A stretch of DNA of 64,000 bases, from sequence record MG592456.1; one strand, 5' to 3'. Positions 2,815 through 61,300 of the stretch are shown in pieces (the stretch's first letter is position 1; each line of letters opens with the position of its first letter). A program made the translations under genes and the position numbers. The notes beneath the pieces are model-generated. The model ran no database searches, was not told the DNA's origin, and saw only the letters and a list, made by a program, of their open reading frames with translations.

Positions 2815-3966
2815 ATGTTAACGAACACGTTAATTCCAGAAATGGTAGATCCGTTGGGGAAATATTGGACACAGCCTAGTCGTTTGAACGTATTAGTTGA
2901 CCGTGCTTATGCTAGTATGAGTCGCAATGCATTCAGTATACTTGCTGATTACAGTCATTCGCGTCCGACGGGAGTGTATGCGGGTAAGATGTGGAAAGCG
3001 AATATCGATGGTGTGTGGTATTTGAAGTGGTATGGTCCAGAGAAAGATCGTCGCTTTGATATCTTGACTAGAGAGTTATTGGTAGATGGTAAAGCGCCAT
3101 GAGTCATGAACAAGTGATAATGTCGTGGTGGTATGTGAATATGTTATTGAATTTAGTCATTGCCGCTAGCGTTTATTTCGTTAAACGCGAGAAATGGCTA
3201 AGATGTATTGACAAATGTGCGATTTGCCTGCTATTATCGTGGGCATTATTGTTAATATCGATGATTATATTCTAGAGGTTACTATGTACGTAAGACAAAT
3301 ATTCAAAGATTTACAAGTTGGTGATGTGATTTACCACATTAATCCGTTTGCTTGTGGTGTTCAGACTGACGTTGAGATAAAGACGATAGTCGTTGAAGAT
3401 ATCGAGCGTTCTTTCTTGTTCGGTATGTTCGGTGAAGATATCGTTTACTTTAGCGGTGATGGTAGCAGGAATGATAGAATGTTCCTGAACGACATGGATT
3501 ATGGGTGCAAGTTCACTACTACTTGCCTGAAAGACGCTCAAGCATACTTGGAAAACGTGCATGAAGGGTTTTTTTCTCATGAAGTTAGTCTCCATCACGA
3601 GGCTGTGCTTGCACAATATCGTTAATATTCGTTGATTCATTGAAGATTCTGCAATAGGTGCCTAGAGTGCCATTGCAGAATGTATAATAATAGTCGTATT
3701 TGACTGAGGAAAGTATAATGCAAGTAACATTACCACGTGGGATTCGTATAGAGATTGTCGATAATGACAATTTAATTTGGGCTGTTGGTACCCGAGCGAC
3801 GTTGGCATTTGAAGAAGTGATTGGTAGTAATCGTAGTAATAACGTATGGTGTGTGATTGACGGTGAGACGATGACCAGTTCCTTGCCGTTTGAGCAGTGT
3901 AAAATCGTTACTGACAATTTCAAGAAATCATTTAAGGGGTTTAGACATGCGCTACACGTTAGATAA
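2815..3966 (+). CDS. Hypothetical ORFs 2815-3102, 3284-3625, 3718-3966
   Basis: RBS-like GAGG upstream of each; plus-strand tiling. Confidence 0.7.
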
Positions 3967-20127: not shown

Positions 20128-20413
20128 AATATTAGTAGCTAAAGCAAAAAATGGTTTAATCGGCGTCGTACTTGCACCAGTTGCAATAACCAACGATTGG
20201 AAAAGAATGCAAACTATTGCGCCAAAGATTAATGAGCAATGGTTCAACTTTCGCCCGTTCGGTGGTGGTAGCATGAGCGTTCAATTATCTACTGTTGAAG
20301 TTATTGGTTCTATATCTGCTGAAGATGCAATCAATCGATACAACGATGAATGTGAGTACAATCACATGAAAGCACCATTCAAAGCTACAATTTTAGAATT
20401 AACATCAAAATAA
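20123..20413 (+). CDS. Early hypothetical protein
   Basis: Behind leader copy 8. Confidence 0.75.
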   Translation: MTILVAKAKNGLIGVVLAPVAITNDWKRMQTIAPKINEQWFNFRPFGGGSMSVQLSTVEVIGSISAEDAINRYNDECEYNHMKAPFKATILELTSK

Positions 20414-20483
20414 TGCTTGCTATTATCACTGCAATCGCCGATAATAGCTTTATTGAAACGCAACTTACAGAGAACATTATGAC
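20414..20483 (+). promoter_or_regulatory. Early promoter/leader module copy 9
   Basis: TTGCTA-17-GATAAT then AGCTTTATTGAAACGCAACTTACAGAGAACATTATGAC. Confidence 0.85.
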
Positions 20484-21938
20484 TAACGCAACTTACACAA
20501 CTGAACAAATCATCTTGAATTTGATTGCTTCACTTTGCCCAAATGATAAAATCACCAAAGGCAACATCCAGAAGGTTCGCTTGCAGTATATGACGCAGCC
20601 TGAATTGTTCTCTCAAGAAGTTCGCATTGAACTTTCATCAGTATGCTCTGTTGCTGAACGTCAACTTGAACGTCGTGCTGCCAATCGCCCTACGTTTAGC
20701 GCGAAAGCTAAAAGTTATTTGAACTTTGATTGGAACAACATTCCTGGTTGTATTGGCTTTGAACGTGTAAATGTAGAGGTTTAAAATGAATTCACGTAAA
20801 TTCTTAGGCGGAATGATGATCATCGCTGGCGCTGCAATGTTTTCAGTTTCAATTATTAATATAATCGATATAAACACTCGCCCCGATGTTAGTAGCGTTT
20901 CGAACTTACCTGAGACGGCGAGCTTAGTTTATGTCCCGATGAAGTCGCCCCCAGTCGAACTTGAATTTACCGGCTTTAAGGTTGGTCAAGTTTGGTATGC
21001 ACGGTCAGTTGACGAATGGGGTGATGTGAGTTCAAGTTCAGTTCAAATCACGAGACTCAATGATGATCTCACGCGAGTAAAATACAAACACATTATTATT
21101 AACGATAAAAACATCACTACGGGAGCTGAGTGGGATATGTCAACTAGACAATTCAAAAATGGTTACATATTGGTCGCTGAACCCTTGACATCTGAAAATA
21201 GTATACTAACCCATGATAGAGTGCTCGATTTAAAAGAACGAAGAGGGAACAAATAATGTTTTTAGAATTACTAAGCAAATACGCTGCGATAATTATGTTG
21301 ACTGCAATGTTTGTAAACGCCTTGACGGTGCCATTTCTATCTACCTGCGGTCGTGTTATCAATTTCGCGTTCGATGCGGGCATTGACTTCGAAAAGGCAA
21401 TCGTCAAACTTCAACGTGTTAAAGGTGGGTGGATCGCATCGGTAACGGATATGCATGATGCATGGCTTGTGTGGTTTGTGATAGATGTGCTAATGATAGG
21501 CATTATCGGGACGATATTAGTCGAACTTACTGCCCCCTGCCTGGGATTCTGGTTATTACTACCGCTATTACCGGTCATGATTCGCTTAATCATTGAATTC
21601 TTCAAACTATTAGACCGTATATTCGGGTTTTAGCGAAAATGAGAACTGAAATTAATCACTACTTTAATAGGACAAATACGCCAATGGACATCACACAATT
21701 ATCTGATGACGATTTACAAAACGAGATTAACCGTCGAGCAAAAGAAGCTGCTAAATTCCCTAGTGTTATTCTTACTGAGGAAGACACAGAATCAGTCATC
21801 CAAGGGCTTGAGCAACTTGCGATGGGTTATCTCGACGACGAGAGACGTGGCAATGAGATTGAAACTCAGTGGGCATATGAATTCGTAATGGTTTCTGTGT
21901 TCGGCACCGATGTATTCGAACGCATGAATAAGCTGTAA
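20479..21938 (+). CDS. Hypothetical ORFs 20479-20784, 20786-21256 (N-terminal TM), 21256-21633 (membrane), ~21639-21938
   Basis: Tiling; hydrophobicity. Confidence 0.7.
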
Positions 21939-21950
21939 AGTAGTACAATC

Positions 21951-21978
21951 AAAAAGCCGACAATTAGTCGGCTTTTTT
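21951..21978 (+). terminator. Intrinsic terminator
   Basis: AGCCGAC-aatta-GTCGGCT followed by a T-run. Confidence 0.85.
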
Positions 21979-22009
21979 GTGCGTGTAACAATATCGCAAC
22001 AACTCCCTG

Positions 22010-22017
22010 TATAAATA
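22010..22017 (+). promoter_or_regulatory. T4-type late promoter
   Basis: Exact TATAAATA, 28 nt before ATG 22046. Confidence 0.8.
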
Positions 22018-22045
22018 CCCGTAGCAATTGCAAAAGGGAGGCTTT

Positions 22046-22375
22046 ATGAAAAAGCTATTATTTGCTGCACTGTTAATGTGCAGTTTCCCGGTATTGGCAC
22101 ACTTACATAGCGACGTGCGCGAGAAAGAAATCGTCTCGTACTCGGACAAAACCGACGCATCAATTGAATTAACGAACTTATATCCGTTCGGCATTGATTT
22201 CGCGGTGACTGTAAATGGTGTCTATCGAGGGAACACAGGGGAGTTTGCGCCAGATGAAGCAGACCATATTCACGTAATGTTAGAAACGTCAGAACCCGGG
22301 GTCAAAGTGCATCGAGTTTGCACCGAATCTGTATCAGCGTTTGTATGCAGTACATTTTGGACGAAGAGGTATTAA
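22046..22375 (+). CDS. Secreted beta-rich protein, putative pilus-chaperone-like
   Basis: Sec signal MKKLLFAALLMCSFPVLA; C-terminal C...C pair; GGGAGG RBS. Confidence 0.55.
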   Translation: MKKLLFAALLMCSFPVLAHLHSDVREKEIVSYSDKTDASIELTNLYPFGIDFAVTVNGVYRGNTGEFAPDEADHIHVMLETSEPGVKVHRVCTESVSAFVCSTFWTKRY

Positions 22376-22377
22376 AC

Positions 22378-22773
22378 ATGAAGAAGCTTATGCTAGTTCT
22401 CTTGTTGCTTGTGCCATTTGGTGTACTTGCGAATGACGGGACTGATCGAATCAGAACGGCAGACGGAAGCATGTGCGAATCATCAGTCAACACGGGTCAA
22501 CGAGTGTATGCGGAAGTCTACAGTGGTGATGAAAATCGCGACAGTATGTATGACTACGGGTACAATAATTACAACAGCGACGAAGTCGGTGTAAAGTTTG
22601 GAGTTGAAATTGAACTTGGTCAAAAGCCTCGTGTCAACTGCAAAAGACTTTATGATCTTGAGTTGCAAGATCGTAAAATGGACTTGCTTCTGAAGCAAGC
22701 CGAATTGGAACTTAAAATGCTTTCGATTAAAGAATCAAAGCACCGTTTAGATGAACGTAAAAGGGATTTTTAA
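22378..22773 (+). CDS. Secreted protein with amphipathic beta-hairpin, Cys pair and C-terminal coiled coil
   Basis: Sec signal MKKLMLVLLLLVPFGVLA; alternating strand VGVKFGVEIEL; LELQDRKMDLLLKQAELELK. Confidence 0.6.
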   Translation: MKKLMLVLLLLVPFGVLANDGTDRIRTADGSMCESSVNTGQRVYAEVYSGDENRDSMYDYGYNNYNSDEVGVKFGVEIELGQKPRVNCKRLYDLELQDRKMDLLLKQAELELKMLSIKESKHRLDERKRDF

Positions 22774-22775
22774 AA

Positions 22776-23282
22776 ATGAAAAAACTAATATTACTTGCAG
22801 CAATGATCGCTCTACCATTTGCATCATTGGCTATGGACAGACACGGACCAGGGCATGGTGGTGGTGATGACAATCGCGTATGGAAATCAGAAGGCGATAA
22901 TCATTTCGTAACTACACAGAAAGGTGTATGTGGGATTCGAGTAATCGATGACACCGCAGATCTTGCTGTTAGCTTAACGGATACCCCCACCATCACTGAT
23001 TACACAGATAACGATGTACTGAACAACAAGTCTGACTACACTGTCATTGATATGGAATACGACTTTGACGACTCTGAGGGCTTGTTTGAAGCGGCTCAAG
23101 TGCAACTTGAAGTGATCGTTGACGGTAGAACTGAACTTCTCCCAGTGGGTGCAACGACATACACAATGACGATGGACAAAAACTTGCAATCGTTTGCTGT
23201 TGGTATGCGTGTTCTCAACGGTACGTTGTTAGAGCAAGGTGATCATAAAGTCACCATCACGTACGATATTGAATGTGAATAA
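22776..23282 (+). CDS. Secreted fimbrial/pilin-like Ig-fold protein
   Basis: Sec signal MKKLILLAAMIALPFASLA; two Cys (near N-terminus and penultimate); C-terminal GDHKVTITYDIEC strand. Confidence 0.55.
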   Translation: MKKLILLAAMIALPFASLAMDRHGPGHGGGDDNRVWKSEGDNHFVTTQKGVCGIRVIDDTADLAVSLTDTPTITDYTDNDVLNNKSDYTVIDMEYDFDDSEGLFEAAQVQLEVIVDGRTELLPVGATTYTMTMDKNLQSFAVGMRVLNGTLLEQGDHKVTITYDIECE

Positions 23283-23294
23283 ACATCAATGATG

Positions 23295-23323
23295 AAAAAG
23301 CTGACTTCGGTCAGCTTTTTTTT
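23295..23323 (+). terminator. Intrinsic terminator
   Basis: AAGCTGAC-TTCG-GTCAGCTT followed by a T-run. Confidence 0.9.
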
Positions 23324-23345
23324 GGCTTAAATTTGCAGAAACCGG

Positions 23346-23418
23346 TTTACAACAGTTTAAAACTCTCGTACTATGTGTCTATCGAAAACGAATACACTTT
23401 ACAAGAGAGTAAAATATG
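23346..23418 (+). promoter_or_regulatory. Early promoter/leader module copy 10 (variant)
   Basis: TTTACA-17-TACTAT then GTGTCTATCGAAAAC. Confidence 0.8.
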
Positions 23419-26400
23419 AAATTAGCAGCATCAGTAGTATCAATGAAAAACGCAATCGACATGATTACATCACAGCCGGGCTTCCAAACTTGGTACGATG
23501 GTATCTGTGAACAGTCAAAAGAAAAATGCTCTGATCCAAATAACCCATGGACTTGTATTCGATGGGCTATCTGGCACGCGCTTCCTCAAGACACCCGTCG
23601 ATTTATCTTACTTGAATCGGATACTACGTTCGTCGGTGGTTACGCGACTGACGTAAACGACAAGCACATTAATACATTACTTGTTAAAGTATTGCCAGTC
23701 ACTCGATTGGTCAAGTTCATGACTCATAAAATCAAACCAAGAGAGAATGTCTAATGTTAACTAATAAAGTCAAAGCAATTTCAATTTACCGCATCGGCGG
23801 CGATGCTTGGTCGAATTTTAACGCTGAAAAATACCCAGAAGAAATCACGTTCACGATATACCAGACTGCCAACGTGCCGCATATTGAAGTATTATGTGAT
23901 GGGTTTACCATCGGGTACTTCCCGCTGTCAGGGTTTGGGATGAGAGTTGAATACTATGAAGACGAAAAATAACGTATGTTGTCGATATGAAAGAATCAGT
24001 CATGTGGATTTTCAGAAAATTTAAGGTTAAATCATGAATAGAACATGGCTATTAATTCGAATATTGTTAATCTCTCTTGTGTGTGTCATGGCGCCTTATG
24101 CGTATGCAAATGCAGGTGGTGCAGGACTATTGGGACCAATCATGGCGCTAGTCGGATTCTCAACATCAATATTTGCTGACGTAACAGAACTAATGGAGAA
24201 GTTAGATGGAAAAGGTTAAGATAAGCGCTCTAGTTGGGATGATGTCGATGGTTGGAATCAACGGTCAATTCCCGTTCACAAGTGGCAATTATTGCAGCAA
24301 CGTTCACGATGTGTATTTCTCAAACATATGGGCTGAGAATCTAATGCACTTAACCTCGACGGGTGTTATTGACGATGGTTTGATCGAAGTACTGTTATTC
24401 ACCGAGAAAGGGGGCGATTACGCATACGTTATCGACGAGCGTGTCCCTAAAGAAGCGATTCACGAGCCATATTTCTGTGGCATCGCTCAGTCAACGCAAA
24501 TCTTGCGATATCATTACGGTCTACCGGAAGATGAATGCGTATGTGAACATGGATTTGCTCAAGGTGGATCATTTGATCATAAAACTCGATGGGTCACTAA
24601 ACGATGCGGTGAGTGTGGTCAACATATCACGTCAAAGTGGGCTGCAAAAGGTGTATTTCATGCAAACGTGAGAACTCATATAGATGGGTTCAGTAACTCA
24701 TACACCATGTGGAAGATAGTGCGCGTTATTGATAATGTGTTCACTGACGTCATGACAGATGAAGTTATCGAACATAGTGATATTGTCAGCATTGTACAAA
24801 TTGAAATATCGTCGATTCCACGTCTCGAAGAACAGAGAAGCGCGATCTCGATTGAGAATTTCACCTACGTGGGTGAAGTCAAACGCAATATGCCGGATGA
24901 AAGACCTATCATGCACGAAGATTATCTGCGCTCAATTGCAACTATAGGCTAAGGAACAGAAAATGTCACGAAACGAATGGATAACTAGTCAAGCTAGATG
25001 AATCGTTGCGTGTCTTGCTTGAAGCATTCGACTACGGCGAATAACGATAAGAGGTGATATTGTGTTCAAATTGAAATGTGATATTTGCGGAGTACCTGAC
25101 TCAGAAAGTAACCCCGTCGGGTCAGATGGGGTGGGGCTGATGATGTGTACGCATTGCTCTGAGCCAAAGTCGGAACAATCAAACGAAGAATTCGATGGAT
25201 TCGACGACGCGATTTAAAATAAGGGTTGCTATATGCAGCCCTTTTCTGTATTCTGAATATATCAAACTAACAAGCGGGAAAAATATGTTTACTTTACCAC
25301 CAGTTCACTACTTGTATGGCGACCCAGAACGCGAAACTGATATGCGCGTCTTTGAAAAGTGCATTGACAACTGCAATGGCACAGGCATTAGCATATGGGA
25401 ATGTGTATACAATCAATACATTCTTGAAGCACTACATCCCGGCACCGACCCCGATTTGCATTTTGAGGTGCTGCCTGAAATTGAGTCTACGATTACAACA
25501 CACAGCAACAGCGACACTATTGTGATTATTACTCGTGACAGCTTCGAGGTGATGTTTTCAGGGCGTGCAAGCGAACAAACAATGTTCGACCTGTTTGAAC
25601 TTATCAAAAATTATGCGGAACAATGGGGTAAAGATCGAGTGTCTTACGTCGAACAACGCTACTCAATCAAGTGGAATTCGCATCAGCAAACGTATGTATT
25701 GCACACGATTGCCAAAGACCGAGATTGGAGATACTAATGAGAGAATGGATAATCAATTTGCTGGGTGGTATTACCAAAGAGCATCGCAATTATTTGTTAC
25801 TGCGTGCAGCTAGTGAGTGGGAGATTGTCAAATATAACAATCTTAGCTACGATGTTGATGCATTGTATTTACTTGAAAGCGGCAAAATCGTCACTGCTCG
25901 AATGATATATCTCGGCCATCACGGACAGATGTTTGTGTTAAATGGGACAATAACTCATTTAATGTCTATTGAAGACAAACCTATTTTTTATAAGTTGATT
26001 GAATCATGAATTTTGAAAAACGATACGCTGAATTGATTAATTCAATTGACGGCGATGACGAAAATATTTTAAGCTTTGAAACGTTCGACAATAGTTGGCG
26101 AGTTGAAGCAGTGAATGGTACAGTATGTCCGTTAGGTGAAGTTAGCGGCGCAATTAATGTATCAGCACCAACATTAGACGAGCTGCTTGTTAAATTAGAA
26201 GCAGCAATCCGCGAATACAACTCTATTGATAGGAGTGTCTAATGCACGAACTAATTATGTATTTTTTTATACTTTGTGGCGCAGCGATTTTACTGATATT
26301 CTTTCATGGCGTGTGGCCGAAGCATTGCTCTCACGATTGGATAGTCGTTACTGATGAAACTACGAAATCACAATGCGAACACTACGCAAGCATAACGGGT

Positions 26401-29987: not shown

Positions 29988-29995
29988 TATAAATA
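29988..29995 (+). promoter_or_regulatory. T4-type late promoter
   Basis: Exact TATAAATA upstream of 30068. Confidence 0.8.
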
Positions 29996-33302: not shown

Positions 33303-33310
33303 TATAAATA
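33303..33310 (+). promoter_or_regulatory. T4-type late promoter
   Basis: Exact TATAAATA upstream of 33349. Confidence 0.8.
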
Positions 33311-58332: not shown

Positions 58333-58385
58333 AGTATTGGTCCTATGAAGTTAGGTGATTATTTCTTATCTCTGCTCAGTAGTAT

Positions 58386-61300
58386 TTATAAACGAAAAAT
58401 TCTCTTCCACCAAGGGCGTCTAAGCTCTTGTACGTCGCTCTGAAGAGACTTAATCATTTCTTGCTGCTCTTTGACACCTTCGATCAATAAACCCACGAGA
58501 TTGCCGTATGCGACTGAATAATGCCCATCTGGGTCGGCTTCAGTCGGGCCACCGGTCACTGCCTCGGGTAAAATCTCAAGAATCTCTTGAGCAATCACCC
58601 CAGTTTGACGACTTGTCGGGTTGTGAGCATCAGGGATAACCTCTGGGCTCATGTCAGTACGAGTATACGTATATCCACTCACTCGACAAATTTTATCAAG
58701 ACTGTTACTGATTGGCTTGATGTCGGTCTTAACGCGAATATCGGAATATGCAGTTACGTTACCACTAGTCCACAATCCATCACCCATTGCCGATTTACCT
58801 GAGCCATTAGCACAGAAAACGACTTGATGTCCACCAGCCATTGAGCCGCCAGTGCCGTTGTTAGTGTGCTTGTAAGCAAGGCCATAGAGATTGCCGAAGT
58901 TCGACCCATCTGCCAAGATAGCGTAGCTGTTGCCCATCGACCAGATATGCCCAACTTTGGTAGAGTCATAAATGCCGTACATACCCGCTCTGCGATAACT
59001 TGTGCTATTCGCTCTAATCTTGCCGTCACTATCAACTGTTAGACGATTGCCTAGTGCCGTAACAGTGTGGCCACTATGGTTGTGTGAGTTATCCCCAACA
59101 ACTGCGCTGATTGACACATTCGCAGAGCCATTGAATGAAACCGAGCCAGTAACGTCGCCTGTTAAGGAGATAGTTCTTGCTGTGGTTAACTTAGCAGCAC
59201 TAGAGGCAGTAGAAGCATTGCCGCTCAATGACGCCGTAATAGTTGTGCCTGAAAACTGAATGTAATTAGCGTTATTCGTGTACCAACGTTGGGTACCGCC
59301 AGTGCCACCCAACGTTTGCAGCTTAAAGCCATTATCAGTATTAACGCGCAAGATATTGTAAGCGCTGCCACTAGATGTAGCGTTCACAAGCAAGCCGCCA
59401 TGACTGTTATGATCCCAACTGCTGCCAATAGGGGTGTGCGAATAGAAGTAATCCCCCGCAGATTGAGCCGTGGCATACAAGTTTCCCGCTCTAAGCGTGT
59501 TTGTTGAGCCTTGGATCTCTACACCTGTTGACGAATACAGCGTATCGCCAGAATGCCACACAACATCATAGTAAGTGGAAGACGCATTAGATCCATTTAC
59601 ATCAACCGTATCAGCCCAAGTAGCTGTAGAAGCATTACCAGCTAGAGCCCCATTAAAAGTAGTAGCCCACATAGAAGTGAATTTCCATGAACTAGTACCA
59701 ATCGCGCCAACACCATTAGATTGTGGTAAAAATCCAGATGATGGAGCTCGCAACCATGTACCTTGAGTCGGCAATACCTGATCATAAGAACCAGACGTTG
59801 ACAGCCATGCGAATTGCGTTGCTTGCCTGCCATCTAGCAAGTCTGCATCTAAGCCAGATCCACTACCATCGTTCCCCGCGCTGTAAACTCTATTGCCCCC
59901 GTCATAAAGACCAGCGTTTGCGTTAATCGCTCCACTGGCGTTAATCGCTCCGCTAGTCAATGTGTTTGTTGCGAAATTCTGACTGCCACTACCTGCTTTA
60001 TATGCAAATCTCGCATTGCTTTCAGTTTCAGTGAAATAACGCCCATCGTGAGTATGCGAGTCATTAGCCACAGTCGTGCTAATCGTAACCGTTTTATTAC
60101 CAGATCCGTCGACTGACATGCTTGCAGATCCAGTAACATCGCCTGTTAAAGTCGTTGTTAACGTTCTTGCAGTTGTCCATTTATCTGCATTCGGGTGATA
60201 ATTGTCCGCAAACACGCGCTGATTGCTGTTGGCATACATGTTGCCGGCAGCGTATGTATTGCCTGTATGCCCGAGAACCCAAAACGATCTTTTGTTAATG
60301 ACATGTCCACTGGTGGCAGAACCCGTGCTTGATAATACGTTGAAACTATCGTTGGAATCATTGGCATAAATGACATTATAAATGTGACCATTTTCAGTGC
60401 TGTCAAATATTGCACCCCCAGCAGTGCCTGGAACTAAACTACTATAACTGCCCGTTTTATATGACGTGTTGACAGTAACCGTTTTGTTCGCAGACCCGTC
60501 GACTGACATGCTAGCTGTACCTGTAACATCACCAGTTAAAGTCGTCGTTAACGTTCTTGCAGTTGTCCATTTATCTGCATTCGGGTGATATCCCTCATTG
60601 AATAGACGATACCACCTCTGCCACTTGCCCGCACCATTAGGAGAGCTGGGGTTATCAGAGGCACCTCGTATATAAAACGAATTGTCGGACGAACTATACG
60701 ACGATGAGATCTGCAATCCCTTTTGACTATCCTGAGACACCGAGAAAATATAAGAATACTGTACAGGATCATTAGTGCCCGGAGGGTTTCCAACCGTATA
60801 GTGTCGTAGTCGATTCCCCCCTGGACCATCCGGAGTCGACCCTCCGAGTTCGATGCCAATCCCCCCGTTAAATAAATTTAGACCAGTCCATGTGTTATTG
60901 CCGGTTAGTGGCCCATATCGAGTGTCATGAGTATGCGAGTCATTAGCAACAGTCGTGTTGACAGTAACCGTTTTATTACCAGACCCATCAACGCTCATGC
61001 TTGCAGAACCCGATACGTCACCGGTTAAAGTCGTTGTTAAAGTTCTAGCAGTCGTCCATTTATCCGCATTCGGATGATATGCATCATGAAATACGTTATT
61101 GCCGTTGTATGTAATCGCTGACGACGCTACTCTGAATGTGCCACCCGACGTCCCAACATGAAATTCCCCATCAGTTCTTACTAATGAACTACCGAAATAC
61201 ACCCCGCTAGTGTGCGTGTTCTGATCGTTTATTCGCAACCATGAATCCGTCGAACGAATAGCGATCTTTGATTTCATTGAAAAATTGTCAACTGACGAAT

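Follow-up and report, generated by a model that had tools for sequence, protein, structure and literature searches.

A mobile three-gene cassette in Vibrio phage 1.081.O encoding predicted exported proteins with features of an usher-free, fimbria-like module

Organization of the cassette in phage 1.081.O

The present analysis concerns a cassette of three genes, here named G1, G2 and G3, which is located in a 64,000-nucleotide stretch of sequence record MG592456.1 (in the following referred to as the window). According to megablast and to the record, this DNA is identical to that of Vibrio phage 1.081.O._10N.286.52.C2, a T4-type, KVP40-like Schizotequatrovirus with a genome of 239 kb; the phage is named 'Vibrio phage', yet Shewanella is entered as its host in the record. 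G1, G2 and G3 correspond to NVP1081O_236, NVP1081O_237 and NVP1081O_238, for all of which the annotation is 'hypothetical protein', and they lie within a run of small genes on the same strand. The genes are separated by spacers of 2 nt, are preceded by the T4-type late-promoter motif TATAAATA and are bounded on both sides by a hairpin with a T-run (Table 1). Each of the encoded proteins starts with MKK, continues with 12-15 hydrophobic residues and reaches a small-x-Ala site (V-L-A in G1, V-L-A in G2 and S-L-A in G3), a pattern for export that is kept throughout each of the three protein families. Cleavage of all three signal peptides is predicted on this basis, and no lipobox was found in the translations of G1, G2 or G3. 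A self-contained cassette of three tightly spaced genes with Sec-type signal peptides, an exact T4 late-promoter motif and a terminator on each side had been described in a first-pass annotation of the window, and these sequence features were found as claimed.

Both flanking hairpins were calculated to have a folding energy of -15.5 kcal/mol (z -4.65 for the upstream and -4.36 for the downstream hairpin), and in either case none of 200 shuffled sequences was as stable. Neither of them was detected by a consensus terminator scan, the likely reason being that A-run and T-run pair with each other. The upstream hairpin is terminator-like and may end the transcript of the gene before the trio. The G+C content of the trio, 43.2%, is in line with that of its surroundings (41-42%). 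Other KVP40-like phages are weakly similar in the flanks and have different genes in between, which makes the trio an accessory insert in a variable region. When the 5-kb segment from 20400 to 25400 was used as query against its own genome, matches were obtained at four places in MG592456.1, and some short segment of the region is therefore repeated elsewhere in the phage.

Table 1. Positions of the cassette and of promoter- and terminator-like features within the window
Feature	Position	Strand	Basis and remarks
Upstream intrinsic-terminator-like hairpin	21951-21978	+	Folding; GC stem 21956-21961/21967-21972, T-run 21973-21978
TATAAATA, T4-type late-promoter motif	22010-22017	+	Motif scan; 28 nt before the G1 start codon
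Shine-Dalgarno sequence of G1, GGGAGG	22036-22041	+	Direct sequence reading
G1, 109 aa	22046-22375	+	ATG at 22046; predicted signal peptide, residues 1-18
G2, 131 aa	22378-22773	+	Predicted signal peptide, residues 1-18
G3, 168 aa	22776-23282	+	Predicted signal peptide, residues 1-19
Downstream intrinsic-terminator-like hairpin	23295-23323	+	Stem 23295-23305/23310-23320 with A:T pairs, loop TTCG, T-run to 23323
Sigma-70-like promoter	23346-23374	+	TTTACA, 17 nt, TACTAT; directly 3′ of the terminator of the trio
Further copy of TATAAATA	29988-29995	+	46-80 nt upstream of an ORF start (range for the three further copies)
Further copy of TATAAATA	33303-33310	+	As above
Further copy of TATAAATA	58383-58390	-	As above

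Co-occurrence of the three families and their carriers

Homologues of G2 with about 32% identity were found in the Vibrio phages 2.275.O and D479, where the genes flanking the G2 homologue match G1 and G3 in size, signal peptides and Cys patterns. Database searches yielded 37 clusters for the G2 family, 25 clusters for the G1 family and, for the G3 family, 206 cluster representatives at E <= 0.001 (56 at <= 1e-10); the profile behind these 206 representatives contained the signal peptide, and the weakest matches may be inflated. The iterative hidden Markov model search was run without the signal-peptide columns, as with them it drifted into G2 via signal-peptide similarity. Counts from genomes, metagenomes and IMG/VR rest on narrow peptide patterns and are lower bounds.

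A set of 21 non-redundant loci was scanned with signal-peptide-free profiles. Every one of the 21 contained G1 and G2, and 18 contained G3, in one to four copies. The first-pass annotation had mentioned trios of this kind from Vibrionaceae and from marine phage contigs, and the co-occurrence of the families at these loci bears this out. The genes are arranged in the orders G1-G2-G3, G3-G1-G2 and G1-G3-G2. G1 stands directly before G2 in 14 of the 17 loci that were measured, with the two genes within 40 nt of each other, and in 6 of the 17 the stop codon of G1 and the start codon of G2 overlap by 4 nt. In the first 14 loci all open reading frames (ORFs) up to 3.5 kb away from G2 were clustered; this revealed no fourth conserved family and no usher, and no usher was seen among the domains in the neighbour gene tables.

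The carriers among phages comprise T4-like and jumbo phages, a contig with gp32 and UvsX-like genes and a P22-portal contig, whereas outside of phages the module is found on two Vibrio plasmids and, among housekeeping genes, in the chromosomes of Endozoicomonas, Ferrimonas and Vibrio ishigakensis. These carriers are unrelated, and the trio is one conserved, mobile envelope module. The closest relative is a copy of the trio on a metagenomic contig (L025), which is 60-70% identical to that of phage 1.081.O. A variant module is present in GCA_018860525.1 (L022, 5001-8047), where G1 and G3 are represented by two paralogues each, one of the G3 paralogues being 304 aa long with a Cys-rich N-terminal domain, and where the G2 gene is fused to an OmpA domain. 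The order there alternates as G3-G1-G3-G1, each G3 paralogue being followed by a G1 paralogue of its own, which suggests cognate G3/G1 pairs. On the P22-portal-type contig (L017, 1-7700) the module has a gene for a 633-aa protein with a YadA anchor (trimeric autotransporter) on one side and the terminase gene on the other, so that genes for two kinds of surface protein share one accessory region.

Several further loci differ in content or surroundings. On plasmid pTHAF190c_d of Vibrio sp. THAF190c (L023, 1263-10345) the module is flanked by two GGDEF/diguanylate-cyclase genes, and the flanks also contain a gene annotated as 'type II secretion system protein' and one for a lipoprotein metalloprotease of the SslE/AcfD family; this neighbourhood consists of surface and biofilm genes. 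At the locus of V. ishigakensis JCM19241 (L010), which has four G3 paralogues, the G1 homologue is an ORF of 77 aa (3548-3778) that matches the C-terminal part of the family alone and is therefore perhaps truncated. A plasmid of Vibrio campbellii BoB-90 (L024, 4579-7031) carries G1 and G2, with no G3 detected; an IS91 transposase gene follows directly after G1/G2, and a type I-E CRISPR-Cas operon precedes them.

Sequence comparisons with described families gave little. Megablast and tblastn searches of phage records with G1 and G3 matched only phage 1.081.O itself, and single-protein scans of IMG/VR with its G2 and G3 yielded no close relative. G1, G2 and G3 had no match in Pfam or NCBIfam, and there were 0 matches to the PADLOC defence models at E up to 1. 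Searches of the PDB sequences with the family profiles gave nothing significant. PHROGs returned a family of unknown function for G2 and nothing else, and a fold search of BFVD nothing beyond the family's own member.

Predicted properties of the three proteins

The AlphaFold (AF2) model of G1, calculated from 25 sequences, is a seven-strand sandwich with a predicted local distance difference test (pLDDT) score of 84. In a Foldseek search about 40 of the top 50 PDB neighbours were, by the author's reading, PapD-like, ASH or MSP domains, among them the chaperones Caf1M, DraB and CsuC (TMq 0.5-0.61, signal peptide included in the query). According to its model G1 is PapD-like in fold, and it resembles domain 1 of the two-domain chaperones in fold alone; it gave no match to Pfam and NCBIfam, PapD_N and PapD_C included, at E up to 10. 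The C-terminal Cys pair pointed out before, Cys92/Cys101, is invariant in the family and is located on the last two modelled strands. For chaperones with a long F1-G1 loop (FGL), a disulfide between strands F1 and G1 and an N-terminal extension before strand A1 are among the defining features (PMC4133393). A conserved motif at the N-terminus precedes the first strand in most relatives of G1 and is shortened in G1 of phage 1.081.O. The predicted first mature residue (codon at 22100-22102 in the window) is His in more than 90% of the relatives, often in an H-S-H-type start; this His recalls histidine-brace proteins and is left unexplained by a role as chaperone. Gln replaces the first His in the G1 homologues of Endozoicomonas and of locus L016. 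When the profiles of G1 and G3 were compared by hhalign, the signal peptides were aligned and nothing else.

In G2 the layout described in the first-pass annotation, in which a Cys pair brackets two amphipathic strands joined by an acidic loop and followed by a coiled coil, is conserved column by column in the family. The end of the signal peptide is conserved as well, with Ala at -1 and, in 88% of the family, Asp at +1. An N-terminal motif containing the first invariant Cys (Cys33) is followed by a strand of alternating hydrophobic and acidic residues and by a variable loop of 25-35 residues, which is rich in Asp, Asn, Tyr, Ser and Gly. In the second strand five alternating positions are hydrophobic in 97-100% of the sequences, with Gly, Lys, Thr and Lys between them, and after it come a Gly-Gly-Pro turn, the second invariant Cys (Cys88), about 30 residues with a heptad pattern, predicted to form the C-terminal helix, and a near-invariant Trp. 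The relative of G2 in locus L022 is a fusion protein, in which the G2 domain takes up residues 38-132 and residues 162-256 match an OmpA peptidoglycan-binding domain (PF00691, E 1.5e-14). As the latter domain works in the periplasm, the fusion suggests that the helix end of G2 is periplasmic and that the positions of the two Cys residues would allow a disulfide formed there to hold the hairpin together at its base. These sequence features fit an oligomer of hairpins inserted into the outer membrane, and they fit a soluble domain tethered to the cell wall as well. For the outer-membrane barrel that the first-pass annotation envisaged for G2, the conserved hairpin and this one fusion give indirect support.

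For G3 the AF2 model (14 sequences) shows an eight-strand beta sandwich with a pLDDT of 78.6 overall and above 90 in the core; the first 40 residues, of which residues ~20-40 belong to the mature part, are of low confidence. The best PDB match in Foldseek was the CFA/I pilin CfaB (E 4.9e-4), and about 17 of the top 50 matches were, by the author's count, subunits of donor-strand fibres. The fibre-forming neighbours include FimG, FimA, PapA, the pilin domain of PapG, CupB6, archaeal cannulae and bundling pili. The N-proximal Cys52 and the penultimate Cys167, which had been noted earlier, occur together in 124 of 140 relatives, while 12 have neither; since they are kept or lost together, a disulfide between them is likely. 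The C-terminal strand shows alternating hydrophobic residues, and 91 of 101 sequences have a Gly at a distance of exactly 12 residues on the N-terminal side of the Cys; one or two residues follow this C-terminal Cys in 71%. A Gly at a comparable place, about 14 residues from the end, and a Tyr in penultimate position are features of classical pilins; this parallel, for which no confirming paper was found, is a lead at most. A further conserved segment with alternating hydrophobic residues, at -10, -8 and -4 from Cys52, forms no strand in the monomer model and is a candidate donor strand.

In all five longer relatives of G3 (264-547 aa) the C-terminal part is the G3 domain, preceded by an additional, unrelated N-terminal domain for which no Pfam match was obtained. 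Such long proteins are encoded in L015 (5908-7551), L010 (4939-5829) and L020 (963-1784 and 2610-3404), and an internally repeated, seemingly helical segment is apparent in the protein of 547 aa. Two-domain tip adhesins have the same layout with a C-terminal pilin domain; none is encoded in the window. One relative of G3 is labelled 'type 1 fimbria pilin' by JGI and another 'Adhesin' in UniRef, in both cases without the basis being given by the source. The Pfam fimbrial families (Fimbrial, SCPU and related ones) gave 0 relevant matches for G3, 14 close and 139 distant relatives. Taken as modelled, the features of the G3 family fit a pilin-type subunit.

The late-promoter motif and transcription of the trio

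In T4-type late units the motif TATAAATA is located at -10 upstream of the gene, and transcription depends on the phage late sigma factor. The motif occurs four times in the 64 kb of the window, a number that does not exceed the expectation by chance (3.3 copies). All four copies, however, are intergenic, lie on the strand of the gene and are found 36-80 nt upstream of an ORF start. Intergenic DNA, calculated as the sum of gaps, makes up only about 8.6% of the annotated 25.5 kb, and because four out of four copies are intergenic and oriented, their placement is non-random (roughly 0.043^4). This placement fits genuine late promoters, whose use is predicted from the sequence. The three other copies (Table 1), which lie dispersed between small accessory genes, are probably late promoters too.

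A sigma-70-like promoter follows directly after the terminator of the trio (Table 1), and a near-consensus TTGACA...TATAAT is found in the same place, after the terminator, at about 1551-1580 of contig L025. The trio would therefore close one transcription unit, with an early-type unit just after it. In phage 1.081.O the trio is probably expressed late.

Interpretation of the cassette

The reading that we favour, tentatively and at somewhat less than an even chance, is that the trio constitutes a mobile, usher-free, fimbria-like module for assembly or display. It is based on the PapD-like fold of G1, the pilin-like fold of G3, the G3 paralogues with adhesin-like versions, the obligatory and envelope-associated third protein, and the predicted export and disulfides of all three. 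In this scheme G3 would be the structural subunit, an exported, polymerizing Ig-like (immunoglobulin-like) sandwich of the pilin type whose first and last strands are linked by a disulfide. G1 would act as a one-domain, PapD-like periplasmic partner, either a chaperone or an adaptor, that binds G3 and holds or delivers it. G2 would be an oligomerizing envelope protein, inserted into the outer membrane or attached to it by its disulfide-clasped hairpin and extending into the periplasm with its coiled coil; it would anchor the structure and may, as a pore, give it an exit route. Since the cassette lies behind a late-promoter motif and between two terminators, production late in infection is proposed; it would then act on the envelope of the dying host, for example by rendering cells or debris adhesive. 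The benefit to the phage is a matter of speculation and might lie in the aggregation of cells or debris or in the masking of receptors, or there may be none, the phage simply carrying a mobile cassette.

A number of observations weigh against this reading. No sequence homology of the trio to fimbrial, chaperone or usher families was found in Pfam, NCBIfam or the PDB. The fold similarities of G3 are weak, with template modelling (TM) scores of 0.38-0.52 and E no better than 5e-4, and unrelated sandwiches, such as Ig domains of PAD4, GOLD domains, carbohydrate-binding modules and FlhE, are interleaved in its list of neighbours. The top-ranked neighbours of G1 are eukaryotic domains of the ASH/HYDIN type from ciliary central-pair proteins, so that only the fold class of G1 is established. 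G1 is moreover a single domain of about 90 residues with a short F-G loop and without the second chaperone domain, which together with the lack of a sequence match places it outside the chaperone family. The strands of G2, with 8-9 residues, are short for a membrane span, and its amphipathic hairpin can equally pack on a helix in a soluble domain. The late-promoter motif was absent upstream of the other 13 loci when 14 were checked including phage 1.081.O, and no exact TATAAATA was seen upstream of the closest relative on L025. Finally, a surface fibre formed minutes before lysis has no obvious use. Of the chaperone-like nature first assigned to G1, the PapD-like Ig fold with chaperones among its neighbours stands, whereas the single domain and the better matches to ASH/HYDIN speak against a chaperone proper. 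The assignment of G3 as an Ig-fold pilin likewise holds to the extent that chaperone-usher pilins are among its best structural neighbours, and lacks a fimbrial link at the level of sequence.

An alternative, which we regard as rather unlikely but as the most probable of the rivals, is a periplasmic or envelope complex that forms no fibre. In such a complex G3 would bind an envelope component such as a receptor, peptidoglycan or lipopolysaccharide, with G1 as its Ig-like partner and with G2 fixing both to the outer membrane or the cell wall; its use to a phage would be late envelope remodelling, the masking of receptors on debris or the exclusion of other phages. The predicted export and disulfides of all three proteins agree with this, as do the late-promoter motif in a lytic phage and the accessory or moron positions of the module in several phages. 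The fusion of G2 to OmpA_C suggests a wall tether, and carbohydrate-binding modules, lectin-like domains and FlhE are among the fold neighbours of G3. Several G3 paralogues per locus and a C-terminal G3 domain in two-domain versions are, however, typical of heteropolymeric fibres, and the fold neighbours are enriched for pilins and PapD-like chaperones. The module also occurs alone in chromosomes and plasmids and is therefore not tied to infection, a further point against this reading. The same occurrence, among housekeeping genes in chromosomes and in plasmids, disagrees with a set of lysis accessories, in which G2 would be a spanin-like coiled coil bridging the membranes and G1 and G3 periplasmic regulators of lysis. 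The late-promoter motif upstream of the cassette, the N-terminal hydrophobic segment and periplasmic coiled coil of G2, and the location of the module on L017 just before the terminase gene, a place of lysis genes and morons, would suit that role. The N-terminus of G2 has a conserved signal-peptidase site, unlike a membrane anchor, the trio includes no lipoprotein partner, and the only PHROGs match is to a family of unknown function; a role in lysis is accordingly judged highly improbable.

Periplasmic copper handling, with G1 as a CopC/YcnI-like sandwich whose mature N-terminal His acts as a histidine brace, draws on the His at this position in the large majority of the family and on the prediction of G1 as a small periplasmic beta sandwich. 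It is considered improbable: CopC, YcnI and cupredoxin are absent from the top 50 fold neighbours of G1, the G1 proteins of Endozoicomonas and L016 begin with Gln instead of His, no metal-resistance genes lie near the examined loci, and G2 and the adhesin-like G3 paralogues would be left without a role. The least probable reading of all takes the three for decoration proteins of the virion or capsid whose N-termini stay uncleaved. Phage decoration proteins often have Ig-like folds, and the cassette stands behind a late-promoter motif. Against this, the conserved and co-varying Cys pairs imply that folding is oxidative and takes place outside the cytoplasm, G2 is fused to OmpA_C in one relative, the module is present in phage-free chromosomal and plasmid contexts, and the BFVD fold search gave no match to a structural protein better than the family's own member.

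Comparison with known systems

As proposed, the trio would work along the lines of a pared-down chaperone-usher system, although it stands outside that family. Chaperone-usher pili, as represented by the FGL systems Caf1M/Caf1 and DraB, the class 5 system CfaA/CfaB and the archaic system CsuC/CsuA/B, consist of Sec-exported Ig-like subunits that are encoded by one or several paralogues, as is the case for G3. Further points of likeness are the long G3 paralogues, in which a further domain stands N-terminal to the subunit domain, the gene of PapD-like fold (G1) that adjoins the subunit gene, the FGL-like Cys pair on the last two modelled strands of G1, and the pilins and chaperones among the nearest solved folds of G3 and G1. 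Chaperone-usher operons, however, include an usher of about 800 aa, which is absent from every locus of the trio that was examined, and their two-domain chaperone has as its counterpart one domain of about 90 residues. The long F1-G1 loop and the domain 2 of FGL chaperones are both missing from G1. The trio differs further in having no fimbrial, PapD or usher match in Pfam or NCBIfam, in the disulfide that would join the first and last strands of the subunit, and in the obligatory third, unrelated protein of 100 residues with hairpin and coiled coil (G2).

Usher-free fibres of small sandwich subunits are represented among the structural neighbours of G3 by archaeal cannulae and the bundling pili of Pyrobaculum; no neighbour listed has a higher TMq than the cannula subunit 9h8b (0.48). 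The archaea that form them have no outer membrane to cross, equivalents of G1 and G2 are not known from them, and homology is not shown. With OmpA/Pal-type proteins, G2 of L022 shares the order of membrane-proximal domain, linker and OmpA_C domain, whereas G2 of phage 1.081.O and most relatives are without OmpA_C, and the N-terminal part is far too small for a barrel formed by a monomer. Phage spanins consist of an inner-membrane coiled-coil protein and an outer-membrane lipoprotein, or of a single molecule that carries both anchors; G2 differs by its signal end of the cleavable type, and the trio by the lack of a lipoprotein.

In marine T4-like pelagimyophages the curli genes csgF and csgG have been reported from a hypervariable region, and a function in aggregation was proposed (PMC7029224). 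This precedent, which had been invoked for the cassette in the first-pass annotation, is thus confirmed by the literature, and in both cases genes resembling those for surface fibres of the host are carried by a marine T4-like phage. Curli are amyloid fibres secreted through a lipoprotein channel, the CsgG 9-mer; the trio, in contrast, has Ig-like folds and no lipoprotein, and is not related to curli in sequence or fold. A search of the trio for CsgG, CsgF and CsgE gave no match in Pfam or NCBIfam and no lipobox.

Biological significance

Searches of the literature for usher-independent or single-domain PapD-like systems yielded no description of the trio. It is conceivable, if unlikely on present evidence, that an undescribed pathway for Ig-fold fibres of Gram-negative bacteria is encoded here, in which an oligomer of the roughly 100-residue G2 takes the place of the usher of about 800 residues and a single PapD-like domain that of the two-domain chaperone, the whole being contained in a cassette of about 1.3 kb that travels among marine bacteria, plasmids and phages and that a lytic T4-like phage turns on late so that host cells or debris become adhesive. 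If a fibre is assembled or displayed, this would be the smallest known Ig-fold pilus system. The usher would then be dispensable, which bears on the evolution of chaperone-usher machines. The cassette would also be the second example, after the curli of pelagimyophages, of lytic marine phages with genes for surface fibres of the host, and a late change of host stickiness by the phage would be testable in a cultured phage-host pair. Even without a fibre, three families of 'hypothetical' proteins are tied into one conserved, mobile envelope module with predicted folds.

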